DNA of 64,000 nucleotides. Source: Ranitomeya imitator (taxonomy: Eukaryota). This document shows, one piece after another, positions 6,325-55,692 of the stretch. The notes beneath the pieces are model-generated. The model was not told the origin of the DNA. It ran no database searches and saw only the letters and a program-made list of their open reading frames with translations. How positions within the stretch are numbered: position 1 is the stretch's first letter; every line of letters starts with the position of its first letter. The DNA lies in the NCBI RefSeq assembly GCF_032444005.1, contig NW_027193546.1, positions 372,001 through 436,000 on the forward strand, read 5' to 3'. The translations under genes and the position numbers were made by a program.

Positions 6325-6645
<321 letters not shown>

Positions 6646-9290: not shown

Positions 9291-9938
<648 letters not shown>

Positions 9939-10248: not shown

Positions 10249-10356
10249 AACATAGTTAGTAACATAGTTAGTAAGGCCGAAAATAGACATTTGTCCATCC
10301 AGTTCAGCCTATATTCCATCATAATAAATACCCAGATCTACGTCCTTCTACAGAAC

Positions 10357-13137: not shown

Positions 13138-13274
13138 GCAGTTTAGAGGATTTTGTTTTGTTCCAATCTCCTCACTGTGGATTGTTTTAGAAATGTTCTT
13201 ACCTCCCTTCTGAGTATGTTTTCCTGGGTCGTCTTTGTTCGAGTCTAATTTTTTTCTTCCCGTCCCCTCTTCTT

Positions 13275-14228: not shown

Positions 14229-14247
14229 GTTGCTCCTAGATCCTGCT

Positions 14248-23200: not shown

Positions 23201-25163
23201 GGAGGAGGTGGTGGCACTGATCATACAGCTCTGCGGGGAGGAGGTGGTGGTACTGATCATACAGCTGTGCGGGGAGGAGGTGATTTCTCTGATCATACAG
23301 CTCTGCAGGGAGGAGGTGGTGGTACTGATCATACAGCTCTGCGGGGGAGAAGGTGGTGGCACTGATCATACAGCTCTGCGGGGTGGAGGTGATTTCTCTG
23401 ATCATACAGCTCTGCAGGGAGGAGTAGGTGGTTGCACTGATGATACAGCTCTGCGGGGAGGAGGTGGTGGCACTGATCATACAGCTCTGCGGGGAGGAGG
23501 AGGTGGCACTGATCATACAGCTCTGCGGGGAGGAGGTGGTGGCACTGATCATACAGCTCAGCTGGGAGGAGGTGGTGGCACTGATCATACAGCTCTGCGG
23601 GGTGGAGGTGATTTCTCTGATCATACAGCTCTGCAGGGAGGAGTAGGTGGTGGCACTGATGATACAGCTCTGCGGGGAGGAGGTGGTGGCACTGATCATA
23701 CAGCTCTGCGGGGAGGAGGAGGTGGCACTGATCATATAGCTCTGCGGGGAGGAGGTGGTGGCACTGATCATACAGCTCTGCGGGGAGGAGGTGGTGGCAC
23801 TGATCATACAGCTCTGCGGGGAGGAGGTGGTGGCACTGATCATACAGCTCTGCGGGGAGGAGGTGGTGGCACTGATCGTACAGCTCTGCGGGGAGGAGGT
23901 GGTGGCACTGATCATACAGCTCTGCAGGGAAGAGGTGGTGGCACTGATCATACAGCTCTGCGGGGAGAAGGTGTTGGCACTGATCATACAGCTCTCCGGG
24001 GAGGAGGTGATTTCTCTGATCATACAGCTCTGCAGGGAGGATGAGGTTATGGCTCTGATCATACAGGTCTGAGGGGAGTAGGTGGTGGCTCTGATCATAC
24101 AGCTCTGCGGGGAGAGGGTGGTGGCACTGATCATACAGCTCTGCGGGGAGGAGGTGATGGCTCTGATCCTACAGCTCTGCGGGGAGAATGTGGTGGCTCT
24201 GATCATACAGCTCTGCGGGGAGAAGGTGGTGGCACTGATCATACGGCTCTCCGGGGAGGAGGTGATTTCTCTGATCATACAGCTCTGCAGGGAGGAGGTG
24301 GTGGCTCTGATCATACAGCTCTGCGGAGAGGAGGTGGTGGCTCTGATCATGCAGCTCTGCGGGGAGGAGGTGGTGGCACTGATCATACAGCTGTGCGGGG
24401 AGTAGGTGGTGGCACTGATGATACAGCTCTGCGGGGAGGAGGTGGTGGCACTGATCATACAGCTCTGCGGGGTGGAGGTGATTTCTCTGATCATACAGCT
24501 CTGCGGGGAGGAGGAGGTGGCACTGATCATACAGCTCTGCGGGGAGGAGGTGGTGGCACTGATCATACAGCTCTGCGGGGAGGAGGTGGTGGCTCTGATC
24601 ATACTGCTCTGCGGGGAGGAGGTGGTGGTACTGATCATACAGCTGTGCGGGGAGGAGGTGATTTCTCTGATCATACAGCTCTGCAGGGAGGAGGTGGTAG
24701 CTCTGATCATACAGCTCTGCGGGGAGGAGGTGGTGGCTCTGATCATACAGCTCTGCGGGGAGGAGGTGGTGGCACTGATCATACAGCTCTGCGAGGAGGA
24801 GGAGGTGGCTCTGATCATACAGCTCTGCGGGGAGGAGGAGGTGGCACTGATCATACAGCTCTGCGGGGAGGAGGTGGTGGCACTGATCATACAGCTCTGC
24901 GGGGAGGAGGTGGTGGCACTGATCATACAGCTCTGCGGGGTGGAGGTGATTTCTCTGATCATACAGCTCTGCGGGGTGGAGGTGGTGGCACTGATCATAC
25001 AGCTCTGCGAGGAGGAGGAGGTGGCTCTGATCATACAGCTCTGCGGGGAGGAGGTGGTGGCACTGATTATACAGCTCTGCGGGGAGAGGGAGGTGGCTCT
25101 GATCATACAGCTCTGCGGGGAGGAGGTGGTGGCTCTGATCATACAGCTCTGCGGGGTGGAGGT
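14248..25163. repeat. 36-bp satellite array (~10.9 kb)
   Basis: Continuous 36-bp units with 37- and 39-bp variants. Confidence 0.98.
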
Positions 25164-28100
25164 AACATAGTAACATAGTAACATAGTAACATAGTTAGTA
25201 AGGCCGAAAAAAGACATTTGTCCATCCAGTTCAGCCTATATTCCATCATAATAAATACCCAGATCTACGTCCTTCTACAGAACCTAATAATTGTATGATA
25301 CAATATTGTTCTGCTCCAGGAAGACATCCAGGCCTCTCTTGAACCCCTCGACTGAGTTCGCCATCACCACCTCCTCAGGCAAGCAATTCCAGATTCTCAC
25401 TGCCCTAACAGTAAAGAATCCTCTTCTATGTTGGTGGAAAAACCTTCTCTCCTCCAGACGCAAAGAATGCCCCCTTGTGCCCGTCACCTTCCTTGGTATA
25501 AACAGATCCTCAGCGAGATATTTGTATTGTCCCCTTATATACTTATACATGGTTATTAGATCGCCCCTCAGTCGTCTTTTTTCTAGACTAAATAATCCTA
25601 ATTTCGCTAATCTATCTGGGTATTGTAGTTCTCCCATCCCCTTTATTAGTTTTGTTGCCCTCCTTTGTACTCTCTCTAGTTCCATTATATCCTTCCTGAG
25701 CACCGGTGCCCAAAACTGGACACAGTACTCCATGTGCGGTCTAACTAGGGATTTGTACAGAGGCAGTATAATGCTCTCATCATGTGTATCCAGACCTCTT
25801 TTAATGCACCCCATGATCCTGTTTGCCTTGGCAGCTGCTGCCTGGCACTGGCTGCTCCAGGTAAGTTTATCATTAACTAGGATCCCCAAGTCCTTCTCCC
25901 TGTCAGATTTACCCAGTGGTTTCCCGTTCAGTGTGTAATGGTGATATTGATTCCCTCTTCCCATGTGTATAACCTTACATTTATCATTGTTAAACCTCAT
26001 CTGCCACCTTTCAGCCCAAGTTTCCAACTTATCCAGATCCATCTGTAGCAGAATACTATCTTCTCTTGTATTAACTGCTTTACATAGTTTTGTATCATCT
26101 GCAAATATCGATATTTTACTGTGTAAACCTTCTACCAGATCATTAATGAATATGTTGAAGAGAACAGGTCCCAATACTGACCCCTGCGGTACCCCACTGG
26201 TCACAGCGACCCAGTTAGAGACTATACCATTTATAACCACCCTCTGCTTTCTATCACTAAGCCAGTTACTAACCCATTTACACACATTTTCCCCCAGGCC
26301 AAGCATTCTCATTTTGTGTACCAACCTCTTGTGTGGCACGGTATCAAACGCTTTGGAAAAATCGAGATATACCACGTCCAATGACTCACCGTGGTCCAGC
26401 CTATAGCTTACCTCTTCATAAAAACTGATTAGATTGGTTTGACAGGAGCGATTTCTCATAAACCCATGCTGATATGGAGTTAAACAGTTATTCTCATTGA
26501 GATAATCCAGAATAACATCCCTCAGAAACCCTTCAAATATTTTACCAACAATAGAGGTTAGACTTACTGGCCTATAATTTCCAGGTTCACTTTTAGAGCC
26601 CTTTTTGAATATTGGCACCACATTTGCTATGCGCCAGTCCTGCGGAACAGACCCTGTCGCTATAGAGTCACTAAAAATAAGAAATAATGGTTTATCTATT
26701 ACATTACTTAGTTCTCTTAGTACTCGTGGGTGTATGCCATCCGGACCGGAGATTTATCTATTTTAATCTTATTTAGCCGGTTTCGCACCTCTTCTTGGGT
26801 TAGATTGGTGACCCGTAATATAGGGTTTTCATTGTTTCTTGGGATTTCACCTAGCATTTCATTTTCCACCGTGAATACCGTGGAGAAGAAGGTGTTTAAT
26901 ATGTTAGCTTTTTCCTCGTCATCTACAACCATTCTTTCCTCACTATTTTTTAAGGGGCCTACATTTTCAGTTTTTATTCTTTTACTATTGATATAGTTGA
27001 AGAACAGTTTGGGATTAGTTTTACTCTCCTTAGCAATGTGCTTCTCTGTTTCCTTTTTGGCAGCTTTAATTAGTTTTTTAGATAAAGTATTTTTCTCCCT
27101 ATAGTTTTTTAGAGCTTCAATGGTGCCATCCTGCTTTAGTAGTGCAAATGCTTTCTTTTTACTGTTAATTGCCTGTCTTACTTCTTTGTTTAGCCACATT
27201 GGGTTTTTCCTATTTCTAGTCCTTTTATTCCCACAAGGTATAAACCGCTTACACTGCCTCTTTAGGATGTTCTTAAACATTTCCCATTTATTATCTGTAT
27301 TCTCATTTCTGAGGATATTGTCCCAGTCTACCAGATTAAGGGCATCTCTAAGCTGGTCAAACTTTGCCTTCCTAAAGTTCAGTGTTTTTGTGACTCCCTG
27401 ACAAGTCCCCCTAGTGAAAGACAGGTGAAACTGTACAATATTGTGGTCGCTATTTCCTAGATGCCCGACCACCTGCAGATTTGTTATTCTGTCAGGTCTA
27501 TTAGATAGTATTAGGTCTAAAAGTGCTGCTCCTCTGGTTGGATTCTGCACCAATTGTGAAAGATAATTTTTCTTGGTTATTAGCAGAAACCTGTTGCCTT
27601 TATGGGTTTCACAGGTTTCTGTTTCCCAGTTAATATCCGGGTAGTTAAAGTCCCCCATAACCAGGACCTCATTATGGGTTGCAGCTTCATCTATCTGCTT
27701 TAGAAGTAGACTTTCCATGCTTTCTGTTATATTTGGGGGTTTGTAACAGACCCCAATGAGAATTTTGTTACCATTTTTCCCTCCATGAATTTCAACCCAT
27801 ATGGACTCGACATCCTCATTCCCTTCGCTAATATCCTCCCTTAAAGTGGACTTTAGACAAGACTTTACATAGAGACAAACCCCTCCTCCTCTCCGATTTT
27901 TACGATCCTTTCTAAACAGACTGTAACCCTGTAAGTTAACTGCCCAGTCATAGCTTTCATCTAACCATGTCTCGGTTATTCCCACTATGTCAAAGTTACC
28001 TGTAGATATTTCTGCTTCTAGTTCTTCCATCTTGTTTGTCAGGCTTCTGGCGTTTGCGAGCATGCAGTTTAGAGGATTTTGTTTTGTTCCAATCTCCTCA

Positions 28101-28986
28101 CTGTGGATTGTTTTAGAAATGTTCTTACCTCCCTTCTGAGTATGTTTTCCTGGGTCGTCTTTGTTCAAGTCTAATGTTTTTCTTCCCGTCCCCTCTTCTT
28201 CTAGTTTAACGCCCTCCTGATGAGTGTAGCGAGTCTTCTGGCGAATGTGTGTTTCCCAGGTTTGTTGAGGTGTAGTCCGTCTCTGGCGAGGAGTCCATCA
28301 TACCAGTAATTCACACCGTGGTCCAGGAATCCAAATCCTTGTTGTCTGCACCATCGTCTTAGCCAGTTGTTTGCATCAAGGATCCTGTTCCATCTCCTGG
28401 TGCCATGCCCGTCTACTGGAAGGATAGAAGAAAAAACTACCTGTGCATCCAGTTCCTTTATTTTCTTCCCCAACTCTTCAAAGTCCTTGCAGATTGTCGG
28501 TAGGTCCTTCCTTGCCGTGTCATTGGTGCCAACATGTATCAGAAGAAATGGGTGGACGTCCTTGGAGCTGAAGAGCTTTGGTATCCTATCGGTCACATCC
28601 TTGATCATCGCACCTGGAAGGCAGCATACTTCTCTTGCAGTTATGTCCGGTCTGCAGATGGCTGCTTCTGTGCCTCTCAGTAGTGAGTCTCCCACCACCA
28701 CCACTCTTCGTTGCTTCTTGGCTGTACTTTTTGCTGTCACTTGTTGCTGTGTGCCCTTTTCTTTTTTGCTTGCTGGTATTGCTTCATTCTTAGGTGTGCC
28801 ACCTTCATCCTCTACAAAGATTTGATATCGGTTCTTCAGTTGTGTGGTTGGTGATTTCTCCATGGTCTTCTTGCTTCTTTTGGTCACATGCTTCCACTCA
28901 TCTGCTTTTGGAGGTTCTCTGACACTTTTTTCACCTTCTGTGACCAGTAGAGATGCTTCTGTTCTGTCTAGAAAGTCTTCATTCTC
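25164..28986 (-). mobile_element. CR1 LINE copy 2, 5'-truncated in ORF1, 1-bp frameshift in ORF2
   Basis: Nearly identical to copy 1; tail (gtaacata)n; ORF2 split into 26717-28168 and 25284-26621 by loss of one C at about 26746; ORF1 remnant 28201-28986; AGGT duplicated at both ends. Confidence 0.96.
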
Positions 28987-31900
28987 AGGTGATTTCTCTG
29001 ATCATACAGCTCTGCGGGGTGGAGGTGGTGGCACTGATTATACAGCTCTGCGGGGAGGAAGTGGTGGCTCTGATCATACAGCTCTGCGGGGGAGAAGGTG
29101 GTGGCACTGATCATACAGCTCTGCGGGGTGGAGGTGATTTCTCTGATCATACAGCTCTGCAGGGAGGAGTAGGTGGTGGCACTGATGATACAGCTCTGCG
29201 GGGAGGAGGTGGTGGCACTGATCATACAGCTCTGCGGGGTGGAGGTGATTTCTCTGATCATACAGCTCTGCGGGGAGGAGGAGGTGGCACTGATCATACA
29301 GCTCTGCGGGGAGGAGGTGGTGGCACTGATCATACAGCTCTGCGGGGAGGAGGTGGTGGCACTGATCATACAGCTCTGCGGGGAGGAGGTGGTGGCACTG
29401 ATTATACAGCTCTGCGGGGAGAGGGTGGTGGCTCTGATCATACAGCTCTGCGGGGAGGAGGTGGTGGCTCTGATCATACAGCTCTGCGGGGAGGAGGTGG
29501 TGGCTCTGATCATACAGCTCTGCGGGGAGGAGGTGGTGGTACTGATCATACAGCTGTGCGGGGAGGAGGTGATTTCTCTGATCATACAGCTCTGCAGGGA
29601 GGAGGTGGTGGCTCTGATCATACAGCTCTGCGGGGAGGAGGTGGTGGCACTGATCATACATCTCTGCGGGGGAGAAGGTGGTGGCACTGATCATACAGCT
29701 CTGCGGGGTGGAGGTGATTTCTCTGATCATACAGCTCTGCAGGGAGGAGTAGGTGGTGGCACTGATCATACAGCTCTGCGGGGAGGAGGAGGTGGCACTG
29801 ATCATACAGCTCTGCGGGGAGGAGGTGGTGGCACTGATCATACAGCTCTGCGGGGAGGAGGTGGTGGCACTGATCATACAGCTCTGCGGGGAGGAGGTGG
29901 TGGCACTGATCATACAGCTCTGCGGGGAGGAGGTGGTGGCACTGATCGTACAGCTCTGCGGGGAGGAGGTGGTGGCACTGATCATACAGCTCTGCAGGGA
30001 GGAGGTCGTGGCACTTATCATACAGCTCTGCGGGGAGAATCTGTTGGCACTGATCATACAGCTCTGCGGGGAGGAGGTGGTGGTACTGATCATACAGCTG
30101 TGCGGGGAGGAGGTGATTTCTCTGATCATACAGCTCTGCAGGGAGGAGGTGGTGGCTCTGATCATACAGCTCTGCGGGGAGGAGGTGGTGGCACTGATCA
30201 TACAGCTCTGCGGGGGAGAAGGTGGTGGCACTGATCATACAGCTCTGCGGGGTGGAGGTGATTTCTCTGATCATACAGCTCTGCAGGGAGGAGTAGGTGG
30301 TGGCACTGATCATACAGCTCTGCGGGGAGGAGGAGGTGGCACTGATCATACAGCTCTGCGGGGAGGAGGTGGTGGCACTGATCATACAGCTCTGCGGGGA
30401 GGAGGTGGTGGCACTGATCATACAGCTCTGCGGGGAGGAGGTGGTGGCACTGATCATACAGCTCTGCGGGGAGGAGGTGGTGGCACTGATCGTACAGCTC
30501 TGCGGGGAGGAGGTGGTGGCACTGATCATACAGCTCTGCAGGGAGGAGGTGGTGGCACTGATCATACAGCTCTGCGGGGAGAAGGTGTTGGCACTGATCA
30601 TACAGCTCTCCGGGGAGGAGGTGATTTCTCTGATCATAGAGCTCTGCAGGGAGGATGAGGTTATGGCTCTGATCATACAGGTCTGAGGGGAGTAGGTGGT
30701 GGCTCTGATCATACAGCTCTGCGGGGAGAGGGTGGTGGCACTGATCATACAGCTCTGCGGGGAGGAGGTGATGGCTCTGATCCTACAGCTCTGCGGGGAG
30801 AATGTGGTGGCTCTGATCATACAGCTCTGCGGGGAGAAGGTGGTGGCACTGATCATACGGCTCTCCGGGGAGGAGGTGATTTCTCTGATCATACAGCTCT
30901 GCAGGGAGGAGGTGGTGGCTCTGATCATACAGCTCTGCGGAGAGGAGGTGGTGGCTCTGATCATGCAGCTCTGCGGGGAGGAGGTGGTGGCACTGATCAT
31001 ACAGCTGTGCGGGGAGGAGGTGGTGGCACTGATCATACAGCTCTGCGGGGAGGAGGTGGTGGTACTGATCATACAGCTGTGCGGGGAGGAGGTGATTTCT
31101 CTGATCATACAGCTCTGCAGGGAGGAGGTGGTGGTACTGATCATACAGCTCTGCGGGGGAGAAGGTGGTGGCACTGATCATACAGCTCTGCGGGGTGGAG
31201 GTGATTTCTCTGATCATACAGCTCTGCAGGGAGGAGTAGGTGGTGGCACTGATGATACAGCTCTGCGGGGAGGAGGTGGTGGCACTGATCATACAGCTCT
31301 GCGGGGAGGAGGAGGTGGCACTGATTATACAGCTCTGCGGGGAGGAGGTGGTGGCACTGATCATACAGCTCTGCTGGGAGGAGGTGGTGGCACTGATCAT
31401 ACAGCTCTGCGGGGTGGAGGTGATTTCTCTGATCATACAGCTCTGCAGGGAGGAGTAGGTGGTGGCACTGATGATACAGCTCTGCGGGGAGGAGGTGGTG
31501 GCACTGATCATACAGCTCTGCGGGGAGGAGGAGGTGGCACTGATCATACAGCTCTGCGGGGAGGAGGTGGTGGCACTGATCATACAGCTCTGCGGGGAGG
31601 AGGTGGTGGCACTGATCATACAGCTCTGCGGGGAGGAGGTGGTGGCACTGATCATACAGCTCTGCGGGGAGGAGGTGGTGGCACTGATCGTACAGCTCTG
31701 CGGGGAGGAGGTGGTGGCACTGATCATACAGCTCTGCAGGGAGGAGGTGGTGGCACTGATCATACAGCTCTGCGGGGAGAAGGTGTTGGCACTGATCATA
31801 CAGCTCTCCGGGGAGGAGGTGATTTCTCTGATCATACAGCTCTGCAGGGAGGATGAGGTTATGGCTCTGATCATACAGGTCTGAGGGGAGTAGGTGGTGG

Positions 31901-34870
31901 CTCTGATCATACAGCTCTGCGGGGAGAGGGTGGTGGCACTGATCATACAGCTCTGCGGGGAGGAGGTGATGGCTCTGATCCTACAGCTCTGCGGGGAGAA
32001 TGTGGTGGCTCTGATCATACAGCTCTGCGGGGAGAAGGTGGTGGCACTGATCATACGGCTCTCCGGGGAGGAGGTGATTTCTCTGATCATACAGCTCTGC
32101 AGGGAGGAGGTGGTGGCTCTGATCATACAGCTCTGCGGAGAGGAGGTGGTGGCTCTGATCATGCAGCTCTGCGGGGAGGAGGTGGTGGCACTGATCATAC
32201 AGCTGTGCGGGGAGGAGGTGGTGGCACTGATCATACAGCTCTGCGGGGAGGAGGTGGTGGTACTGATCATACAGCTGTGCGGGGAGGAGGTGATTTCTCT
32301 GATCATACAGCTCTGCAGGGAGGAGGTGGTGGTACTGATCATACAGCTGTGCGGGGAGGAGGTGATTTCTCTGATCATACAGCTCTGCAGGGAGGAGGTG
32401 GTGGCACTGATCATACAGCTCTGCGGGGAGGAGGTGGTGGCACTGATCATACAGCTCTGCGGGGAGGAGGTGGTGGCACTGATCATACAGCTCTGCGGGG
32501 AGGAGGTTGTGGCACTGATCATACAGCTCTGCGGGGAGGAGGTGATTTCTCTGATCATACAGCTCTGCAGGGAGGAGTAGGTGGTGGCACTGATGATACA
32601 GCTCTGCGGGGAGGAGGTGGTGGCACTGATCATACAGCTCTGCGGGGTGGAGGTGATTTCTCTGATCATACAGCTCTGCGGGGAGGAGGAGGTGGCACTG
32701 ATCATACAGCTCTGCGGGGAGGAGGTGGTGGCACTGATCATACAGCTCTGCGGGGAGGAGGTGGTGGCTCTGATCATACTGCTCTGCGGGGAGGAGGTGG
32801 TGGTACTGATCATACAGCTGTGCGGGGAGGAGGTGCTTTCTCTGATCATACAGCTCTGCAGGGAGGAGGTGGTGGCTCTGATCATACAGCTCTGCGGGGA
32901 GGAGGTGGTGGCTCTGATCATACAGCTCTGCGGGGAGGAGGTGGTGGCACTGATCATACAGCTCTGCGAGGAGGAGGAGGTGGCTCTGATCATACAGCTC
33001 TGCGGGGAGGAGGAGGTGGCACTGATCATACAGCTCTGCGGGGAGGAGGTGGTGGCACTGATCATACAGCTCTGCGGGGAGGAGGTGGTGGCACTGATCA
33101 TACAGCTCTGCGGGGAGGAGGTGGTGGCACTGATTATACAGCTCTGCGGGGAGAGGGAGGTGGCTCTGATCATACAGCTCTGCGGGGAGGAGGTGGTGGC
33201 TCTGATCATACAGCTCTGCGGGGTGGAGGTGATTTCTCTGATCATACAGCTCTGCGGGGTGGAGGTGGTTGCACTGATTATACAGCTCTGCGGGGAGGAA
33301 GTGGTGGCTCTGATCATACAGCTCTGCGGGGGAGAAGGTGGTGGCACTGATCATACAGCTCTGCGGGGTGGAGGTGATTTCTCTGATCATACAGCTCTGC
33401 AGGGAGGAGTAGGTGGTGGCACTGATGATACAGCTCTGCGGGGAGGAGGTGGTGGCACTGATCATACAGCTCTGCGGGGTGGAGGTGATTTCTCTGATCA
33501 TACAGCTCTGCAGGGAGGAGGAGGTGGCACTGATCATACAGCTCTGCGGGGAGGAGGTGGTGGCACTGATCATACAGTTCTGCGGGGAGGAGGTGGTGGC
33601 ACTGATCATACAGCTCTCCGGGGAGGAGGTGGTGGCACTGATTATACAGCTCTGCGGGGAGAGGGTGGTGGCTCTGATCATACAGCTCTGCGGGGAGGAG
33701 GTGGTGGCTCTGATCATACAGCTCTGCGGGGTGGAGGTGATTTCTCTGATCATACAGCTCTGCGGGGTGGAGGTGGTGGCACTGATTATACAGCTCTGCG
33801 GGGAGGAAGTGGTGGCTCTGATCATACAGCTCTGCGGGGAGGAGGTGGTGGCACTGATCATACAGCTCTGCGGGGTGGAGGTGATTTCTCTGATCATACA
33901 GCTCTGCAGGGAGGAGTAGGTGGTGGCACTGATGATACAGCTCTGCGGGGAGGAGGTGGTGGCACTGATCATACAGCTCTGCGGGGAGGAGGTGGTGGCA
34001 CTGATCATACAGCTCTGCGGGGAGGAGGTGGTGGCACTGATCGTACAGCTCTGCGGGGAGGAGGTGGTGGCACTGATCATACAGCTCTGCAGGGAGGAGG
34101 TGGTGGCACTGATCATACAGCTCTGCGGGGAGAAGGTGTTGGCACTGATCATACAGCTCTGCGGGGAGGAGGTGGTGGTACTGATCATACAGCTGTGCGG
34201 GGAGGAGGTGATTTCTCTGATCATACAGCTCTGCAGGGAGGAGGTGGTGGCTCTGATCATACAGCTCTGCGGGGAGGAGGTGGTGGCACTGATCATACAG
34301 CTCTTCGGGGGAGAAGGTGGTGGCACTGATCATACAGCTCTGCGGGGTGGAGGTGATTTCTCTGATCATACAGCTCTGCAGGGAGGAGTAGGTGGTGGCA
34401 CTGATCATACAGCTCTGCGGGGAGGAGGAGGTGGCACTGATCATACAGCTCTGCGGGGAGGAGGTGGTGGCACTGATCATACAGCTCTGCGGGGAGGAGG
34501 TGGTGGCACTGATCATACAGCTCTGCGGGGAGGAGGTGGTGGCACTGATCATACAGCTCTGCGGGGAGGAGGTGGTGGCACTGATCGTACAGCTCTGCGG
34601 GGAGGAGGTGGTGGCACTGATCATACAGCTCTGCAGGGAGGAGGTGGTGGCACTGATCATACAGCTCTGCGGGGAGAAGGTGTTGGCACTGATCATACAG
34701 CTCTCCGGGGAGGAGGTGATTTCTCTGATCATAGAGCTCTGCAGGGAGGAGGTGGTGGCACTGATCATACAGGTCTGAGGGGAGTAGGTGGTGGCTCTGA
34801 TCATACAGCTCTGCGGGGAGAGGGTGGTGGCACTGATCATACAGCTCTGCGGGGAGGAGGTGGTGGCTCT
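28987..34870. repeat. 36-bp satellite array (~5.9 kb) ending in the H1 stem-loop
   Basis: The last unit ...ggaggaggtggtggctct is continuous with tataagagcc. Confidence 0.98.
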
Positions 34871-34880
34871 TATAAGAGCC
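34865..34880 (-). terminator. Histone 3' stem-loop of H1 copy 1
   Basis: GGCTCT-TATA-AGAGCC-ACCAC, then AGAGCTGTA 16 nt after the stem. Confidence 0.93.
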
Positions 34881-34908
34881 TTTGTGGTAACAGAACAGGG
34901 GCTGCAGC

Positions 34909-35547
34909 TTATTTCTTAGCCGCGGGCTTCTTGGCTTTCGCAGCCTTCTTAGCCGGACTCTTGGCGGGTTTGGCCGCCTTCTTAGCCGGACTCTTCGTCA
35001 CCTTCTTGGGCTTGGGAGCGGCTTTCGGCTTCTTGGGGCTCTTGGCCGCTTTCTTGGCCGCTGCGGGCTTCTTGGCCTTTTTCGGGCTCTTCTTGGCCGC
35101 AGTCGGAGCCTTCTTGGGCTTCTTCGGAGATTTGGCGGCTTTCTTGGCAGCAGCGGGTTTCTTAGGTTTGGCCGCAGCTGCTGGCTTCGTCTTGGCCACT
35201 TTGTCCTTCGTCTCCTGCTTCTTGTTCAGCTTGAAGGACCCGGAGGCGCCGCTGCCTTTCACCTGGAGGAGGGCGCCCTTGGTGACCAGAGCCTTGACGG
35301 CCAGCTTCAGGCGGCTGTTGTTCTTCTCTACATCGTATCCTCCAGCAGACAGAGCCTTCTTCAGGGCGGCCAGAGACACCCCGCTGCGCTCCTTGGAGGC
35401 GGACACGGCTTTCACGATCAGCTCGGAGACGCTGGGGCCGGAGGGTTTATTGCTCTTCTTGGCAGCAGATTTCTTCGGCTGCTTCTTGGATTTGGCGGCC
35501 GGTTCTGCGGGAGGGGGAGCGGCGGCTGGCGCGGTCTCTGCCATCAT
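34909..35547 (-). CDS. H1: Linker histone H1, copy 1 (212 aa; second ATG at 35544)
   Basis: [11 protein letters not shown]-terminus, globular domain [26 protein letters not shown]...[11 protein letters not shown], Lys/Ala/Pro-rich tail with SPKK motifs. Confidence 0.97.
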
Positions 35548-35619
35548 GTGCTGCTGAAGCTAAATGAAAATATTTCCTGATAGGAAGGAAAACACTGAGG
35601 CCGGAGCTGGAGGCGCCTG

Positions 35620-35754
35620 TTATATGTACAGGCTTACTGCGCACTGATTGGCTGCTGAGCAGCACCGTCCTGAGCTTCTATTGGCTGACACTGGACACAG
35701 GCCCCGCCCCCTCCCAGCTGAGTCCGAGTGAAGCTCCGCTCTCCCCTTGTGCTT
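35620..35754 (-). promoter_or_regulatory. H1 promoter (TATA, 2 CCAAT, GC box, AC-box-like)
   Basis: ATATAA 35620-35625; attgg 35647 and 35680; gccccgcccc 35701; AAGCACA (AAACACA-like) 35748-35754. Confidence 0.65.
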
Positions 35755-36547
35755 CCCTGCCCGGGATAAAAGCCCTTTACCGGCTAACACCGGACAGCAG
35801 AGCGCGATTCCTCCGTCGCCTCCCCTTCTCCAACATCTCCACCGGCCATTTGTAGCCGTCACTAGCAGAGATGCCGGGAAAGAGCGGAGAGGAAATCCCG
35901 GGATCATCGCCGCCGTCCTCCCGATCTGCACCTCACTGTGTACCGGGGAGATAAATCTGCTGCGGGAGCTCGTTCCTCCTATTCCCGGCTCCTGTCACCA
36001 TCACAGGGATCTTTACTCCTATGTCTATCGCACAGGAAGCTGATTGTACGATGTGGGGACGAGCTGGAGCTGCTGAGAACCCAGAAGGGTAACACAGGCG
36101 ACGGCCTCCGCTGACTGCCACCTCCCTGACCTGTGGTGTCACTGTACCCCGTATGTGCAGAGGATTGGGGGGACACGTGTTCCACATCAGTAGATGATCC
36201 ACATCGGTGGCTGATTGCAATCACCTGCCTGATATCGTGTCTTACCCAGTGTGAAGCTGTGACCGCTGCGGCCTGTCATGGTGCGAAGAGCTCTGATGAG
36301 GCGACAGCTGCACACTGCGACTCCCCAACCAAACACATAAACATCTCCGGGGAGAAAACTGAAATATTAATGGATTTATGTGACCCCCACTATTGTGTAA
36401 AAGGGGAATATTGGGAGAAAAGCGGAGACACAAAATCCAGCGTCTACACAGAGAACACAGCTGTACATAGTTTATATAGTGCACAACATCACATCTGCAC
36501 AGCCCAGATCAGCAGTGTAATAAGTGTCACTGATACTAGAGGAGAGG

Positions 36548-36839
36548 GTACAGTATATACAGCAGAGTGTACAGTATATACAGCAGAGTACACAGTATAT
36601 AGAGCAGAGTGTACAGTATATACAGCAGAGTACACAGTATATAGAGCAGAGTGTACAGTATATACAGCAGTGTGCACAGTATATAGAGCCAGTGTGTACA
36701 GTATATACAGCAGTGTGTACAGTATATAGAGCAGTGTGTAAAGTATATACAGCAGTGTGTACAGTATATAGAGCAGTGTGTAAAGTATATACAGCAGTGT
36801 GTACAATTTATAGACCAGAGTGTACAGTATATAGAGCAG
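36548..36839. repeat. 21-bp minisatellite (gtacagtatatacagcagagt)
   Basis: About 14 imperfect tandem units. Confidence 0.9.
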
Positions 36840-37220
36840 TCTCCCCTCTCTTCTTCTTTCTCTCTCTCTCTCTCTCTCCCTCTTTCTTAATCTCTATTTC
36901 TCTCTCCTCTCTTTCATTATTTCCTTCTCTCCTTTCTCTCTTCGCTCTCCTCTCTTTCTTTCTCTCTTCTTTTTTCTCTAAATATTTCTCTCACTCTTAC
37001 TCTTTCTTCCTTTCTATTTCTCTCTCTCCCTCTCTTTCCCTTGCTTTCTCTTTTTCTTACTTTATATCTATCTCTCTCCTTCTCTCTTTCTTTATCTCTC
37101 TTCTCTCTCTCTCTCTTTATGTCTCTTTGTCTCTCTTTCTCTCTTTCTCCCTTTCTTTCTCTCTATCTCCTTCTTTCTCATTCTCTCTCTTTCACTTTAT
37201 CTCTCTCTTTCTCTCTCTCA
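36840..37220. repeat. CT-rich low-complexity polypyrimidine tract
   Basis: About 380 nt almost entirely C/T, ending in tctcag. Confidence 0.9.
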
Positions 37221-37613: not shown

Positions 37614-37620
37614 CACCACC

Positions 37621-40600
37621 AGCTCTGCGGGGAGAGGGTGGTGGCACTGATCATACAGCTCTGCGGGGAGGAGGTGATGGCTCTGATCCTACAGCTCTGC
37701 GGGGAGAATGTGGTGGCTCTGATCATACAGCTCTGCGGGGAGAAGGTGGTGGCACTGATCATACGGCTCTCCGGGGAGGAGGTGATTTCTCTGATCATAC
37801 AGCTCTGCAGGGAGGAGGTGGTGGCTCTGATCATACAGCTCTGCGGAGAGGAGGTGGTGGCTCTGATCATGCAGCTCTGCGGGGAGGAGGTGGTGGCACT
37901 GATCATACAGCTGTGCGGGGAGGAGGTGGTGGCACTGATCATACAGCTCTGCGGGGAGGAGGTGGTGGTACTGATCATACAGCTGTGCGGGGAGGAGGTG
38001 ATTTCTCTGATCATACAGCTCTGCAGGGAGGAGGTGGTGGTACTGATCATACAGCTCTGCGGGGGAGAAGGTGGTGGCACTGATCATACAGCTCTGCGGG
38101 GTGGAGGTGATTTCTCTGATCATACAGCTCTGCAGGGAGGAGTAGGTGGTGGCACTGATGATACAGCTCTGCGGGGAGGAGGTGGTGGCACTGATCATAC
38201 AGCTCTGCGGGGAGGAGGAGGTGGCACTGATCATACAGCTCTGCGGGGAGGAGGTGGTGGCACTGATCATACAGCTCTGCTGGGAGGAGGTGGTGGCACT
38301 GATCATACAGCTCTGCGGGGTGGAGGTGATTTCTCTGATCATACAGCTCTGCAGGGAGGAGTAGGTGGTGGCACTGATGATACAGCTCTGCGGGGAGGAG
38401 GTGGTGGCACTGATCATACAGCTCTGCGGGGAGGAGGAGGTGGCACTGATCATACAGCTCTGCGGGGAGGAGGTGGTGGCACTGATCATACAGCTCTGCG
38501 GGGAGGAGGTGGTGGCACTGATCATACAGGTCTGCGGGGAGGAGGTGGTGGCACTGATCATACAGCTCTGCGGGGAGGAGGTGGTGGCACTGATCGTACA
38601 GCTCTGCGGGGAGGAGGTGGTGGCACTGATCATACAGCTCTGCAGGGAGGAGGTGGTGGCACTGATCATACAGCTCTGCGGGGAGAAGGTGTTGGCACTG
38701 ATCATACAGCTCTCCGGGGAGGAGGTGATTTCTCTGATCATACAGCTCTGCAGGGAGGATGAGGTTATGGCTCTGATCATACAGGTCTGAGGGGAGTAGG
38801 TGGTGGCTCTGATCATACAGCTCTGCGGGGAGAGGGTGGTGGCACTGATCATACAGCTCTGCGGGGAGGAGGTCATGGCTCTGATCCTACAGCTCTGCGG
38901 GGAGAATGTGGTGGCTCTGATCATACAGCTCTGCGGGGAGAAGGTGGTGGCACTGATCATACGGCTCTCCGGGGAGGAGGTGATTTCTCTGATCATACAG
39001 CTCTGCGGAGAGGAGGTGGTGGCTCTGATCATGCAGCTCTGCGGGGAGGAGGTGGTGGCACTGATCATACAGCTGTGCGGGGAGGAGGTGGTGGCACTGA
39101 TCACACAGCTCTGCGGGGAGGAGGTGGTGGTACTGATCATACAGCTGTGCGGGGAGGAGGTGATTTCTCTGATCATACAGCTCTGCAGGGAGGAGGTGGT
39201 GGTACTGATCATACAGCTGTGCGGGGAGGAGGTGATTTCTCTGATCATACAGCTCTGCAGGGAGGAGGTGGTGGCACTGATCATACAGCTCTGCGGGGAG
39301 GAGGTGGTGGCACTGATCATACAGCTCTGCGGGGAGGAGGTGGTGGCACTGATCATACAGCTCTGCGGGGAGGAGGTGGTGGCACTGATCATACAGCTCT
39401 GCGGGGAGGAGGTGATTTCTCTGATCATACAGCTCTGCAGGGAGGAGGTGGTAGCTCTGATCATACAGCTCTGCGGGGAGGAGGTGGTGGCTCTGATCAT
39501 ACAGCTCTGCGGGGAGGAGGTGGTGGCACTGATCATACAGCTCTGCGAGGAGGAGGAGGTGGCTCTGATCATACAGCTCTGCGGGGAGGAGGAGGTGGCA
39601 CTGATCATACAGCTCTGCGGGGAGGAGGTGGTGGCACTGATCATACAGCTCTGCGGGGAGGAGGTGGTGGCACTGATCATACAGCTCTGCGGGGAGGAGG
39701 TGGTGGCACTGATTATACAGCTCTGCGGGGAGAGGGAGGTGGCTCTGATCATACAGCTCTGCGGGGAGGAGGAGGTGGCACTGATCATACAGCTCTGCGG
39801 GGAGGAGGTGGTGGCACTGATCATACAGCTCTGCGGGGGAGAAGGTGGTGGCACTGATCATACAGCTCTGCGGGGTGGAGGTGATTTCTCTGATCATACA
39901 GCTCTGCAGGGAGGAGTATGTGGTGGCACTGATGATACAGCTCTGCGGGGAGGAGGTGGTGGCACTGATTATACAGCTCTGCGGGGGAGAAGGTGGTGGC
40001 ACTGATCATACAGCTCTGCGGGGTGGAGGTGATTTCTCTGATCATACAGCTCTGCAGGGAGGAGTAGGTGGTGGCACTGATGATACAGCTCTGAGGGGAG
40101 GAGGTGGTGGCACTGATCATACAGCTCTGCGGGGTGGAGGTGATTTCTCTGATCATACAGCTCTGCGGGGAGGAGGAGGTGGCACTGATCATACAGCTCT
40201 GCGGGGAGGAGGTGGTGGCACTGATCATACAGCTCTGCGGGGAGGAGGTGGTGGCACTGATCATACAGCTCTGCGGGGAGGAGGTGGTGGCACTGATTAT
40301 ACAGCTCTGCGGGGAGAGGGTGGTGGCTCTGATCATGCAGCTCTGCGGGGAGGAGGTGGTGGCTCTGATCATACAGCTCTGCGGGGTGGAGGAGATTTCT
40401 CTGATCATACAGCTCTGCGGGGTGGAGGTGGTGGCACTGATTATACAGCTCTGCGGGGAGGAAGTGGTGGCTCTGATCATACAGCTCTGCGGGGGAGAAG
40501 GTGGTGGCACTGGTCATACAGCTCTGCGGGGTGGAGGTGATTTCTCTGATCATACAGCTCTGCAGGGAGGAGTAGGTGGTGGCACTGATGATACAGCTCT

Positions 40601-43600
40601 GCGGGGAGGAGGTGGTGGCACTGATCATACAGCTCTGCGGGGTGGAGGTGATTTCTCTGATCATACAGCTCTGCAGGGAGGAGTAGGTGGTGGCACTAAT
40701 GATACAGCTCTGCGGGGAGGAGGTGGTGGCACTGATCATACAGCTCTGCGGGGAGGAGGTGGTGGCTCTGATCATACAGCTCTGCGGGGAGGAGGTGGTG
40801 GCTCTGATCATGCAGCTCTGCGGGGAGGAGGTGGTGGCACTGATCATACAGCTGTGCGGGGAGGAGGTGGTGGCACTGATCATACAGCTCTGCGGGGAGG
40901 AGGTGGTGGCTCTGATCATACAGCTCTGCGGGGAGGAGGTGGTGGTACTGATCATACAGCTGTGCGGGGAGGAGGTGATTTCTCTGATCATACAGCTCTG
41001 CAGGGAGGAGGTGGTGGCTCTGATCATACAGCTCTGCGGGGAGGAGGTGGTGGCACTGATCATACAGCTCTGCGGGGGAGGAGGTGGTGGCACTGATCAT
41101 ACAGCTCTGCGGGGTGGAGGTGATTTCTCTGATCATACAGCTCTGCAGGGAGGAGTAGGTGGTGGCACTGATCATACAGCTCTGCGGGGAGGAGGAGGTG
41201 GCACTGATCATACAGCTCTGCGGGGAGGAGGTGGTGGCACTGATCATACAGCTCTGCGGGGAGGAGGTGGTGGCACTGATCATACAGCTCTGCGGGGAGG
41301 AGGTGGTGGCACTGATCATACAGCTCTGCGGGGAGGAGGTGGTGGCACTGATCGTACAGCTCTGCGGGGAGGAGGTGGTGGCACTGATCATACAGCTCTG
41401 CAGTGAGGAGGTGGTGGCACTGATCATACAGCTCTGCGGGGAGAAGGTGTTGGCACTGATCATACAGCTCTGCGGGGAGGAGGTGGTGGTACTGATCATA
41501 CAGCTGTGCGGGGAGGAGGTGATTTCTCTGATCATACAGCTCTGCAGGGAGGAGGTGGTGGCTCTGATCATACAGCTCTGCGGGGAGGAGGTGGTGGCAC
41601 TGATCATACAGCTCTGCGGGGGAGAAGGTGGTGGCACTGATCATACAGCTCTGCGGGGTGGAGGTGATTTCTCTGATCATACAGCTCTGCAGGGAGGAGT
41701 AGGTGGTGGCACTGATCATACAGCTCTGCGGGGAGGAGGAGGTGGCACTGATCATACAGCTCTGCGGGGAGGAGGTGGTGGCACTGATCATACAGCTCTG
41801 CGGGGAGGAGGTGGTGGCACTGATCATACAGCTCTGCGGGGAGGAGGTGGTGGCACTGATCATACAGCTCTGCGGGGAGGAGGTGGTGGCACTGATCGTA
41901 CAGCTCTGCAGGGAGGAGGTGGTGGCACTGATCATACAGCTCTGCGGGGAGAAGGTGTTGGCACTGATCATACAGCTCTCCGGGGAGGAGGTGATTTCTC
42001 TGATCATAGAGCTCTGCAGGGAGGATGAGGTTATGGCTCTGATCATACAGGTCTGAGGGGAGTAGGTGGTGGCTCTGATCATACAGCTCTGCGGGGAGAG
42101 GGTGGTGGCACTGATCATACAGCTCTGCGGGGAGGAGGTGATGGCTCTGATCCTACAGCTCTGCGGGGAGAATGTGGTGGCTCTGATCATACAGCTCTGC
42201 GGGGAGAAGGTGGTGGCACTGATCATACGGCTCTCCGGGGAGGAGGTGATTTCTCTGATCATACAGCTCTGCAGGGAGGAGGTGGTGGCTCTGATCATAC
42301 AGCTCTGCGGAGAGGAGGTGGTGGCTCTGATCATGCAGCTCTGCGGGGAGGAGGTGGTGGCACTGATCATACAGCTGTGCGGGGAGGAGGTGGTGGCACT
42401 GATCATACAGCTCTGCGGGGAGGAGGTGGTGGTACTGATCATACAGCTGTGCGGGGAGGAGGTGATTTCTCTGATCATACAGCTCTGCAGGGAGGAGGTG
42501 GTGGTACTGATCATACAGCTCTGCGGGGGAGAAGGTGGTGGCACTGATCATACAGCTCTGCGGGGTGGAGGTGATTTCTCTGATCATACAGCTCTGCAGG
42601 GAGGAGTAGGTGGTTGCACTGATGATACAGCTCTGCGGGGAGGAGGTGGTGGCACTGATCATACAGCTCTGCGGGGAGGAGGAGGTGGCACTGATCATAC
42701 AGCTCTGCGGGGAGGAGGTGGTGGCACTGATCATACAGCTCTGCTGGGAGGAGGTGGTGGCACTGATCATACAGCTCTGCGGGGTGGAGGTGATTTCTCT
42801 GATCATACAGCTCTGCAGGGAGGAGTAGGTGGTGGCACTGATGATACAGCTCTGCGGGGAGGAGGTGGTGGCACTGATCATGCAGCTCTGCGGGGAGGAG
42901 GAGGTGGCACTGATCATACAGCTCTGCGGGGAGGAGGTGGTGGCACTGATCATACAGCTCTGCGGGGAGGAGGTGGTGGCACTGATCATACAGCTCTGCG
43001 GGGAGGAGGTGGTGGCACTGATCATACAGCTCTGCGGGGAGGAGGTGGTGGCACTGATCGTACAGCTCTGCGGGGAGGAGGTGGTGGCACTGATCATACA
43101 GCTCTGCAGGGAAGAGGTGGTGGCACTGATCATACAGCTCTGCGGGGAGAAGGTGTTGGCACTGATCATACAGCTCTCCGGGGAGGAGGTGATTTCTCTG
43201 ATCATACAGCTCTGCAGGGAGGAGGTGGTGGCTCTGATCATACAGCTCTGCGGAGAGGAGGTGGTGGCTCTGATCATGCAGCTCTGCGGGGAGGAGGTGG
43301 TGGCACTGATCATACAGCTGTGCGGGGAGGAGGTGGTGGCACTGATCATACAGCTCTGCGGGGAGGAGGTGGTGGTACTGATCATACAGCTGTGCGGGGA
43401 GGAGGTGATTTCTCTGATCATACAGCTCTGCAGGGAGGAGGTGGTGGTACTGATCATACAGCTCTGCGGGGGAGAAGGTGGTGGCACTGATCATACAGCT
43501 CTGCGGGGTGGAGGTGATTTCTCTGATCATACAGCTCTGCAGGGAGGAGTAGGTGGTTGCACTGATGATACAGCTCTGCGGGGAGGAGGTGGTGGCACTG

Positions 43601-49600: not shown

Positions 49601-51278
49601 GGCACTGATCATACAGCTCTGCGGGGAGGAGGTGGTGGCACTGATCATACAGCTCTGCGGGGAGGAGGTGGTGGCACTGATTATACAGCTCTGCGGGGAG
49701 AGGGAGGTGGCTCTGATCATACAGCTCTGCGGGGAGGAGGTGGTGGCTCTGATCATACAGCTCTGCGGGGTGGAGGTGATTTCTCTGATCATACAGCTCT
49801 GCGGGGTGGAGGTGGTGGCACTGATTATACAGCTCTGCGGGGAGGAAGTGGTGGCTCTGATCATACAGCTCTGCGGGGGAGAAGGTGGTGGCACTGATCA
49901 TACAGCTCTGCGGGGTGGAGGTGATTTCTCTGATCATACAGCTCTGCAGGGAGGAGTAGGTGGTGGCACTGATGATACAGCTCTGCGGGGAGGAGGTGGT
50001 GGCACTGATCATACAGCTCTGCGGGGTGGAGGTGATTTCTCTGATCATACAGCTCTGCAGGGAGGAGGAGGTGGCACTGATCATACAGCTCTGCGGGGAG
50101 GAGGTGGTGGCACTGATCATACAGCTCTGCGGGGAGGAGGTGATGGCACTGATCATACAGCTCTCCGGGGAGGAGGTGGTGGCACTGATTATACAGCTCT
50201 GCGGGGAGAGGGTGGTGGCTCTGATCATACAGCTCTGCGGGGAGGAGGTGGTGGCTCTGATCATACAGCTCTGCGGGGTGGAGGTGATTTCTCTGATCAT
50301 ACAGCTCTGCGGGGTGGAGGTGGTGGCACTGATTATACAGCTCTGCGGGGAGGAAGTGGTGGCTCTGATCATACAGCTCTGCGGGGGAGAAGGTGGTGGC
50401 ACTGATCATACAGCTCTGCGGGGTGGAGGTGATTTCTCTGATCATACAGCTCTGCAGGGAGGAGTAGGTGGTCGCACTGATGATACAGCTCTGCGGGGAG
50501 GAGGTGGTGGCACTGATCATACAGCTCTGCGGGGTGGAGGTGATTTCTCTGATCATACAGCTCTGCAGGGAGGAGTAGGTGGTGGCACTGATGATACAGC
50601 TCTGCGGGGAGGAGGTGGTGGCACTGATCATACAGCTCTGCGGGGAGGAGGTGGTGGCACTGATCATACAGCTCTGCGGGGAGGAGGTGGTGGCACTGAT
50701 CGTACAGCTCTGCGGGGAGGAGGTGGTGGCACTGATCATACAGCTCTGCAGGGAGGAGGTGGTGGCACTGATCATACAGCTCTGCGGGGAGAAGGTGTTG
50801 GCACTGATCATACAGCTCTGCGGGGAGGAGGTGGTGGTACTGATCATACAGCTGTGCGGGGAGGAGGTGATTTCTCTGATCATACAGCTCTGCAGGGAGG
50901 AGGTGGTGGCTCTGATCATACAGCTCTGCGGGGAGGAGGTGGTAGCACTGATCATACAGCTCTGCGGGGGAGAAGGTGGTGGCACTGATCATACAGCTCT
51001 GCGGGGTGGAGGTGATTTCTCTGATCATACAGCTCTGCAGGGAGGAGTAGGTGGTGGCACTGATCATACAGCTCTGCGGGGGAGAAGGTGGTGGCACTGA
51101 TCATACAGCTCTCCGGGGAGGAGGTGATTTCTCTGATCATAGAGCTCTGCAGGGAGGAGGTGGTGGCACTGATCATACAGGTCTGAGGGGAGTAGGTGGT
51201 GGCTCTGATCATACAGCTCTGCGGGGAGAGGGTGGTGGCACTGATCATACAGCTCTGCGGGGAGGAGGTGGTGGCTCT
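37621..51278. repeat. 36-bp satellite array (~13.7 kb) ending in the H1 stem-loop
   Basis: Continuous units; last unit fused to GGCTCTTATAAGAGCC. Confidence 0.98.
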
Positions 51279-51288
51279 TATAAGAGCC
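51273..51288 (-). terminator. Histone 3' stem-loop of H1 copy 2
   Basis: GGCTCT-TATA-AGAGCC-ACCAC. Confidence 0.93.
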
Positions 51289-52957: not shown

Positions 52958-53166
52958 GGTACAGTATATACAGCAGAGTGTACAGTATATACAGCAGAGT
53001 ACACAGTATATAGAGCAGAGTGTACAGTATATACAGCAGTGTGCACAGTATATAGAGCCAGTGTGTACAGTACATACAGCAGTGTGTACAGTATATAGAG
53101 CAGTGTGTAAAGTATATACAGCAGTGTGTACAATTTATAGACCAGAGTGTACAGTATATAGAGCAG
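52958..53166. repeat. 21-bp minisatellite, shorter paralog
   Basis: Same unit as 36548-36839, about 4 units fewer. Confidence 0.88.

Positions 53167-55371: not shown

Positions 55372-55692
<321 letters not shown>

Follow-up and report, generated by a model that had tools for sequence, protein, structure and literature searches.

The question raised by this poison-frog histone gene cluster (Ranitomeya imitator) is where the 36-bp tandem repeat that lies directly behind its H1 genes came from, and whether the repeat does anything there. We analyzed the window, a stretch of 64,000 nucleotides. Wrap-around alignment to a 36-mer consensus gave 891 tandem units covering 32,064 bp of it, near the ~880 that a sequence-only reading of this DNA had estimated from array length divided by 36, and TRF returned the same 36-bp period. 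The answer we favor is that the repeat probably arose in place, as the 3′-processing signal of a dendrobatid frog's replication-dependent H1 gene became amplified in tandem, with the inner units as a by-product.

The arrays and their junction with histone H1

All 891 units lie head to tail in the H1-sense orientation, and the longest single array extends over 13.7 kb. Unit length is 36 bp in 782 of them, 37 bp in 33 and 39 bp in 65. We distinguished 100 unit variants. A unit shows ~2.2 differences, its divergence from the consensus being ~6%; the first hexamer is AGTGCC in 63% of units and AGAGCC in 36%. Long head-to-tail arrays, a short unit, homogenization of variants and the presence of length variants are the properties of satellite or minisatellite DNA. 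Identical units come back at lags of 113–149 units, and across the arrays we found neither a short higher-order repeat nor a gradient of divergence from edge to center. The exact 9-mer AGAGCTGTA, which had been said to be carried by every canonical unit, is intact in 758 of the 891 (85%) and thus not in every one. The spacing from the ACCA context to this element is 16 nt in every unit. Behind H1, units 3 and 4 already carry mutated elements.

The repeat is divided into several segments (window coordinates; features lie on the minus strand unless stated otherwise). The segment adjoining H1 copy 1 (29005–34870) was found by wrap-around alignment and TRF to hold ~164 units, and is followed by the second of two LINE insertions inside the array (LINE 2, 25143–29004), which is 5′-truncated, with a broken ORF2 and a 3′ tail of (ACTATGTT)n. 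Beyond it, another ~302 units identified by the same two methods (14248–25142) lead to LINE 1 (10250–14247), a full-length element with an ORF1 of 339 aa and an ORF2 of 926 aa that shares 99.3% identity with LINE 2. The distal end of the array consists of four units (10110–10249) and stops exactly after TGATC at 10110. An array of ~379 units, delimited by wrap-around alignment, lies behind H1 copy 2 (37620–51278). Its distal end at ~37620 is a duplication breakpoint (AGAGCTG / GTGGTG / GCAAGTCATT..), and the flank found there occurs again at ~53940, where it runs on into unique DNA; by this pair of positions, H1 copy 2 and its array are a segmental duplicate. Forty-one further units (1–1454) run off the start of the window and begin mid-unit at a rearrangement junction. 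The flank at this junction (1452–5437) is 99.7% identical to 60014–64000, and the second copy enters unique DNA after a shared GAG.

Where does the repeat begin? H1 copy 1 (34909–35547, stop codon included) is an open reading frame of 212 aa that contains PF00538 and whose closest protein hits, at 91–99% identity, are H1 proteins of dendrobatids. RNA-like contigs over this gene end at ~35570–35576, once with adapter sequence next, and this is likely the 5′ end of its mRNA. H1 copy 2 (51317–51955), also an open reading frame, encodes an identical protein. Read in the sense direction, copy 1 ends with its stop codon (TAA, 34909–34911), a 3′ UTR of 28 nt, the stem-loop, ACCACCTCCTCCCCGC, AGAGCTGTA and TGATC, and past this first TGATC the sequence AG(T/A)GCC-ACCACC... 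repeats. The stem-loop, GGCTCT-UAUA-AGAGCC (34865–34880), is a 16-nt hairpin with a 6-bp stem and a 4-nt loop, placed 28 nt past the stop codon (canonical distance, 25–60 nt). A local search with Rfam RF00032 matched 34839–34885 at 29.9 bits (E 6.6e-07), short of the gathering score of 34 because the UAUA loop is unusual. The 3′ arm of the hairpin (34865–34870) is at the same time the first six bases of unit 1 (34835–34870), which continues with the ACCA cleavage context, the C-rich spacer, AGAGCTGTA (34840–34848) and TGATC. At copy 2 the stem-loop (51273–51288) reads the same, and unit 1 spans 51243–51278. At both genes, as the sequence-only reading had proposed, the array begins inside the 3′ arm of the stem-loop (at 34870 and 51278), so that the cleavage site, spacer and U7-complementary element belonging to the gene itself make up unit 1. 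Units 1 to 5 do not differ between the two genes, and the two junctions are one event copied by segmental duplication, not independent events.

Single-copy counterparts in other frogs

A lone ...AGAGCC ACCACC..CCCCGC AGAGCTGTA TGATC, expected by the earlier reading behind H1 of related frogs, is present once in both Leptodactylus and Rhinoderma. In Leptodactylus fuscus (L003:2406 onward) and in Rhinoderma darwinii (L004:2197 onward) exactly one copy lies directly 3′ of the H1 stem-loop, reading AGAGCC-ACCACCTT(G/C)TCCC(C)GGC-AGAGCTGTA-TGATC. The window species, Leptodactylus and Rhinoderma agree at 32 of the 36 unit positions, and divergence sets in straight past TGATC. The monomer is homologous to a single-copy functional sequence in outgroups, the property that marks a gene-derived satellite. 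In the more distant Mixophyes fleayi, AGAGCTATA lies 17 nt past the H1 stem, and the position of the H1 element past the stem agrees between the window and the other frogs. The Eleutherodactylus coqui locus (L002) has neither a canonical stem-loop nor an array and is uninformative here, and one Phyllobates terribilis H1, which bears on gene spacing only, has an H3 gene ~1 kb past it. The lone 36-nt stretches behind H1 in Leptodactylus and Rhinoderma point to the satellite being an in-place amplification of the H1 3′-processing signal, and these single-copy versions support the original proposal that it arose by amplifying an mRNA-processing signal. That proposal had come with the remark that no description of a satellite of such origin was known; when we searched the literature for a satellite that stems from a histone processing signal, we found none.

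A transcript contig from run X9 looks like an empty site. It carries an H1 of 97.4% identity, one stem-loop, one element and no array, and it continues into sequence matching 27 of 30 bases at 10005–10034 (plus strand), in the flank beyond the far end of the array (one match, against 0.00 expected). Splicing was considered as the cause of the contig junction and rejected because GT..AG boundaries, judged by eye, are absent. A 75-bp segment (10035–10109) separates the array end from the X9-like flank, and we count it against in-place amplification. When the far flank (9850–10109) was compared with the H1 downstream flanks of the outgroups, no significant similarity was found (z = −0.5 and 1.2; sensitive blastn empty). 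The Rhinoderma and Leptodactylus H1 downstream flanks share a block (z = 13.6).

The history of such an amplification can be outlined in steps. The progenitor is the segment that starts with AGAGCC, the 3′ arm of the hairpin behind H1, and passes through ACCA, the C-rich spacer and AGAGCTGTA to TGATC, the segment seen singly in other hyloid frogs. A first duplication probably took place by slippage or unequal exchange between AGAGCC and the similar hexamer AGTGC. located just past TGATC, and an exchange of this kind would explain the mixture of AGTGCC and AGAGCC unit starts (63% and 36%). Later growth, as the breakpoints show, came from unequal crossing-over together with duplications, some internal and multi-kb in size, others segmental and on the scale of the cluster. 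Unit 1 alone completes the hairpin and would constitute the full processing signal; as the only unit to do so, it presumably makes the 3′ end of H1 mRNA. The other ~890 units would most likely be weak, non-productive sites with a 9-bp U7 duplex and no hairpin, and the array a by-product of repeat dynamics, not a purpose-built device. In our view the repeat is a gene-derived satellite whose function, if any, is putative.

U7 pairing and the inner units

Can the repeated element be recognized by U7 snRNA? Human and mouse U7 read ..GUGUUACAGCUCUUUU.. (PMC7026596), and the claim that the U7 5′ region is complementary to the element holds for these published sequences, which stand here as a proxy for the U7 of this frog; no U7 gene was found within the window. 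AGAGCUGUA, which begins 16 nt past the stem, pairs with UACAGCUCU of the human/mouse proxy in 9 contiguous base pairs at a computed −14.0 kcal/mol, and the duplex energy of unit 1 is equalled by 0.7% of shuffles. With human/mouse U7 as the proxy, unit 1 has a downstream element within the canonical distance of ~10–20 nt from the stem. The element of H1 had also been called the best U7 match of any histone gene here. It does form the sole uninterrupted 9-bp helix; in energy, however, H2B (−14.3) and H4 (−12.4 to −13.9) are similar to H1 through interrupted pairings. In the remaining frog histone genes the elements have (A)GAGCTGTA(A) in common, consistent with conservation of the U7 5′ end.

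Inside all arrays the 5′ stem arm, GGCTCT, has zero occurrences on the H1-sense strand, and inner units 2 to 891 therefore form no SLBP-binding hairpin. Folding of the array RNA was not significant (z = −0.57). The poly(A) hexamer is absent from both strands of the arrays. Over the 5.8 and 13.7 kb that follow the two H1 genes, no 3′-end motifs other than the repeated elements are recognizable, a point that we set against the by-product explanation. Within the unit, the GCAGAGCTGTATGATCAG block is the least variable (intact in 79–85% of units, as compared with 49–69% for other 9-nt windows), and the block may accordingly be under constraint, which also weighs against our preferred explanation. 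Its lower variability is weak, with a Mann-Whitney p of ~0.05 for copy-weighted counts and of 0.27 for distinct substitutions. The proposed check of whether the 9-mer varies less than the rest of the unit placed it in the least variable part, but the difference is marginal and is shared with the adjoining TGATCAG, for which the known U7 5′ end offers no complement.

Could the array nevertheless be functional? Read-through H1 transcripts would then display hundreds of U7 sites, as a fail-safe for cleavage or termination or as a U7 snRNP platform that seeds the histone locus body. The exact 9-mer in 85% of units, the low variability of the element block, the 16-nt spacing kept from unit to unit and the lack of a poly(A) signal in the arrays are all consistent with such a role, as is the presence of the array in runs of several organism labels. 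RNA-like assembled contigs continue past the H1 cleavage site as far as the end of unit 1, and satellite contigs occur in three of the four RNA-like runs, these RNA runs being assembled contigs from which molecule ends are not readable. Both kinds of contig would speak for function, as does the published finding that a histone locus body can be nucleated de novo by a histone pre-mRNA and that its equivalent in amphibian oocytes, the C snurposome, contains U7 (PMC3771687). Against it, the hairpin-less inner units offer no SLBP anchor, and their 9-bp duplex is weak for SLBP-independent processing: such cleavage needs a strong duplex of ~16 bp, and processing fell below 5% with a substrate reduced to 9 uninterrupted pairs (PMC7026596). 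In addition, TGATCAG is equally invariant yet without a U7 partner, the element is not significantly less variable when mutation types are counted (p = 0.27), the units closest to H1 already have mutated elements, and LINE insertions have been tolerated. With a repeat of such high copy number, carried-over genomic DNA could also account for the satellite depth in the RNA-like runs. On balance a functional array seems unlikely. That the read-through RNA acts as a cis-linked multivalent scaffold, concentrating U7 snRNP and seeding or enlarging the histone locus body, or provides a zone of fail-safe cleavage or termination, strikes us as quite improbable.

It is very unlikely that the array or its size is an artifact of long-read assembly. 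Long, near-uniform tandem arrays are hard to assemble, and the duplications at lags of 113–149 units could include collapsed or expanded stretches. However, satellite words occur in 20 runs from 10 studies under six organism labels, contigs of independent runs span the junction of H1 with unit 1, and within the arrays the units come in many distinct variants and in several lengths, and the two LINE junctions differ. The six organism labels suggest that the array persists, and this persistence we again count against a mere by-product of amplification. Scarcely credible, finally, is an unrelated satellite that landed by H1 or replaced its 3′ flank, its resemblance to the signal being a coincidence of the junction: the array at 1–1454 follows unrelated DNA and not H1, and the far flank has no detectable orthology to the outgroup H1 flanks, but the whole unit, not the junction alone, is single behind H1 in two other frog families, the 1454 junction is a secondary duplication breakpoint with GAG microhomology, the stem arm, ACCA and element stand at canonical spacing within the unit, and the outgroup single copies appear largely to have refuted this explanation already.

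Comparison with known systems

A satellite origin that can be traced base by base is rare. Here the progenitor, the probable microhomology, the attached unit 1 and the single-copy outgroup states are all visible, which would make amplification of the H1 signal a clear textbook example of how a cis-regulatory RNA signal gives birth to a satellite. For histone mRNA biology the locus is also a natural experiment: an expressed H1 gene is followed immediately by hundreds of U7 target sites that lack a hairpin, and in oocytes of this vertebrate group histone locus bodies are seen attached to the histone loci. It raises for these frogs the questions of U7 snRNP titration, of back-up cleavage and of an effect on body formation. 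The multivalent scaffold, if true, would be a natural satellite selected for the recruitment of an RNA-processing factor. Even an inert array would have consequences for annotation, since in related assemblies the gene models seem to run across it.

How does the array compare with systems already described? On the lampbrush loops of newts, read-through transcription extends into satellite DNA around the histone clusters (Gall, Stephenson, Diaz and colleagues, 1981; cited in PMC2114352, PMC7151628). Newt and poison frog alike have long satellite arrays immediately 3′ of clustered histone genes. The newt units are a few hundred bp long and do not come from a histone processing signal, whereas here the unit is the signal; read-through from a histone promoter is documented there and only hinted at by contigs here. 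Hairpin-less U7-binding RNAs, engineered or natural, share with the inner units a U7-complementary element and an upstream cleavage context with no stem-loop, but efficient SLBP-independent substrates form a duplex of ~16 bp and the satellite unit one of 9 bp (PMC7026596).

Unit 1 together with the 5′ arm resembles the canonical histone 3′ signal (stem-loop, ACCCA and a U7-paired element; RF00032) in having a 6-bp stem, a 4-nt loop, ACCA and the 9-mer 16 nt past the stem. It differs in its UAUA loop, in a purine core of AGAG rather than AAAGAG, and in being followed by ~890 further copies that lack the 5′ arm. Gene-derived satellites exist, an example in frogs being PcP190, which comes from 5S rDNA. 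There, as here, the monomer can be followed back to a functional gene segment of which relatives still carry one or a few copies. Unlike PcP190, the progenitor in this cluster is a 36-nt cis-acting RNA-processing signal and not a transcribed gene body, and the array is still attached, in phase, to its progenitor gene.

The H1 gene and its satellite

The window is a histone gene cluster from a dendrobatid (poison) frog, half of which consists of a 36-bp tandem repeat. Two identical H1 genes lie on the minus strand (34909-35547 and 51317-51955), as do genes for H2B, H4 and H3, with further H4, H2A and H2B genes beyond. Against H1 proteins of Ranitomeya and Phyllobates, the H1 protein shows 91-99% identity, and a 1.02-Mb contig of one public assembly encodes the identical protein five times or more. 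The satellite occupies 1-1454, 10110-34870 (broken by LINEs at 10250-14247 and 25143-29004) and 37620-51278. Each H1 gene is preceded, ~1 kb upstream, by a 21/42-bp minisatellite of 7-14 copies (36543-37219 and 52954-53544), directly followed by ~370 bp of imperfect (CT)n; its copy number is unequal between the two duplicated H1 segments. In an H4 pair (55381-55692, plus strand; 6325-6636, minus strand), one gene codes GGVKSISG and the other the canonical GGVKRISG, an Arg-to-Ser change in a protein that is otherwise invariant.

In H1 sense, 28 nt of 3' UTR separate the stop codon from the hairpin GGCTCT-TATA-AGAGCC (34865-34880); then come ACCACCTCCTCCCCGC, the U7-complementary element AGAGCTGTA (34840-34848) and TGATC, after which the second unit opens AGTGCC-ACCACC. 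The second H1 gene reads identically. Alignment of the arrays to a cyclic consensus gave 891 units over 32,064 bp, all in H1 orientation. An earlier sequence-only reading had described this junction and estimated ~880 units; both were borne out. Unit lengths are 36 bp (n = 782), 37 bp (n = 33) and 39 bp (n = 65). There are 100 distinct variants, the consensus itself accounting for 19% of units, and the mean divergence from it is ~2.2 bases per unit. At position 3, 63% of units have T and 36% have A. The exact 9-mer AGAGCTGTA is retained in 85%.

Origin and expansion of the array

We compared the H1 loci of three other frogs, Leptodactylus fuscus, Rhinoderma darwinii and Mixophyes fleayi. After the H1 stem-loop, Leptodactylus carries one copy of ACCACCTTGTCCCGGC-AGAGCTGTA-TGATC and Rhinoderma one copy of ACCACCTTCTCCCCGGC-AGAGCTGTA-TGATC. 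When these are aligned with a poison-frog unit, 32 of the 36 positions are invariant and the similarity stops right past TGATC. The more distant Mixophyes has AGAGCTATA 17 nt past the H1 stem. These single-copy signals identify the satellite unit as the processing signal of the ancestral H1 gene, running from the stem 3' arm to the point where the conserved block ends. The sequence-only reading had proposed that the satellite arose by amplification of this signal, and had pointed to related frogs as the place to look for a single-copy unit behind H1. Both Leptodactylus and Rhinoderma have one, and the alignment thus supports such an origin. Directly past TGATC stands ACTGGCC in Rhinoderma and A-ATGC in an array-less H1 contig from sequencing run X9, suggesting that an AGTGC-like hexamer may once have stood just beyond the signal. 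In the first duplication, the AGAGCC stem arm and this hexamer would have provided microhomology spaced 36 bp, which would also account for the T/A split at position 3. The far array flank showed no significant similarity to the outgroup H1 flanks.

Contigs of four sequencing runs were placed on 34620-35720. None covers the promoter; coverage ends at 35558-35576, and in run X25 adapter sequence lies just beyond this end, so the runs behave as RNA. The interval 35558-35576 is likely the transcription start of H1. Record 25 of run X9 (on 34842-35576) is a transcript contig with H1 at 97.4% identity that continues through the stem-loop, the spacer and one element into at least 182 nt of non-satellite sequence. 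Over the 30 nt of this sequence compared, 27 bases match window positions 10005-10034, beyond the far end of the large array; the number of such matches expected by chance was 0.00. The two array flanks are thus contiguous in some copy or species, as in-place expansion predicts, and an array-less, read-through H1 copy exists. Between the X9-matching flank and the exact array end (TGATC, 10110) lie 75 AT-rich bp (10035-10109), with no resemblance to the unit or to the outgroup flanks. An exact-match contig from run X26 extends from the coding sequence past the cleavage site to 34838. Satellite contigs appear in three of the four runs, although at such a repeat copy number they may be carry-over of genomic DNA.

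Units 1-5 are identical behind both H1 genes, mutations included, and the arrays diverge beyond. The second array ends distally at a breakpoint, consisting of AGAGCTG, six additional bases and then GCAAGTCATTAAAC; the same flank recurs at ~53940, where it runs on into unique DNA. This shared flank shows that a tandem duplication copied the H1 gene together with 2.7 kb upstream of it and a portion of the array, and the two H1-satellite junctions are therefore a single event. The array at 1-1454 starts mid-unit and is preceded by unrelated DNA. Its flank (1452-5437) is 99.7% identical to 60014-64000, and this second copy has unique sequence past a shared GAG; this array edge is another secondary breakpoint and not an independent origin.

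U7 pairing and the inner units

Human and mouse U7 both contain ..GUGUUACAGCUCUUUUAG.. at the 5' end (PMC7026596). With UACAGCUCU of this RNA, the unit forms 9 contiguous base pairs at -14.0 kcal/mol, a value equalled by 0.7% of shuffles. The sequence-only reading had called this the best U7 match of any histone gene here. Indeed, of the histone genes in the window H1 alone forms a 9-bp helix without interruption, but interrupted pairings bring H2B (-14.3) and H4 (-12.4 to -13.9) to similar energies; H3 pairs weakly (-6.8). The elements of the Mixophyes core histone genes have (A)GAGCTGTA(A) in common, as would be expected if the U7 5' end is conserved among frogs.

The extra copies may have a function, though on present evidence neutral repeat dynamics are the likelier explanation. 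In favour of a function, variability within the unit is lowest in the block GCAGAGCTGTATGATCAG, which is intact in 79-85% of units versus 49-69% elsewhere. Whether the 9-mer varies less than the rest of the unit had been raised earlier, and its block does, but the effect is marginal (p ~0.05 copy-weighted; p = 0.27 by distinct substitutions) and the block takes in TGATCAG, a stretch that pairs with nothing in the known U7 5' end. Against a function, the 5' arm GGCTCT is absent from the sense strand throughout the arrays and the array RNA has no significant structure, so the inner units (2 to 891) have no SLBP site. Hairpin-independent cleavage requires a strong duplex of ~16 bp, and a substrate cut down to nine uninterrupted pairs was processed at <5% (PMC7026596). 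On the side of a function, the arrays are free of poly(A) hexamers, and the X26 contig and satellite contigs described above would point the same way.

Related events, other taxa and known systems

The two LINEs (10250-14247 and 25143-29004, minus strand) are 99.3% identical, one full length with intact ORFs and the other 5'-truncated. Each carries an (ACTATGTT)n 3' tail and encodes a GDSL-esterase-like motif in its ORF1. The two insertion points fall between unit positions 12 and 13 of two different variants, after AGTGCCACCACC and after AGAGAAATCACC, which suggests two independent insertions with a target preference within the unit. Behind the H2B stem-loop (3401-3445 and 61963-62007, minus strand), TAAGAGCC-ACCCACAC, a motif that takes in the end of the loop, the 3' arm and the cleavage context, is present in two copies 24 nt apart. 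In H2B, the "downstream element" thus resembles a second stem-arm copy, and this flank is a two-copy version of the type of duplication that started the H1 satellite. At 4638-4672 and 63200-63234 (minus strand) there is an orphan histone-type stem-loop, AAAGGCTCTTCTAAGAGCC, with a second TAAGAGCC 23 nt later and no histone ORF upstream on the same strand; it may be the relic of a histone gene that has been lost.

Satellite words were found in 20 runs, which come from 10 studies and bear six organism labels. A contig from organism E covers the H1 3' UTR, stem-loop and element; over ~154 nt it differs by 12 substitutions and 9 gap positions, so the arrangement is common to at least one other, moderately diverged taxon. 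In Ranitomeya variabilis the annotated H1 gene model stretches over 13.6 kb to encode 240 aa, and in Anomaloglossus over 1.8 kb to encode 203 aa; these models may be the product of automatic annotation that splices across a repeat beside H1.

Gene-derived satellites are a known class, and the novelty here is an RNA-processing signal as progenitor. In the literature on satellites with the histone downstream element, U7, histone clusters, dendrobatids and the Ranitomeya genome, we found no description of a satellite derived from a histone processing signal. The C snurposomes of Xenopus oocytes are histone locus bodies with U7 inside, and a histone pre-mRNA is capable of nucleating one of these bodies (PMC3771687). 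The histone clusters of newts, likewise amphibians, lie within satellite DNA, and transcription there reads through on lampbrush loops (as cited in PMC2114352 and PMC7151628).
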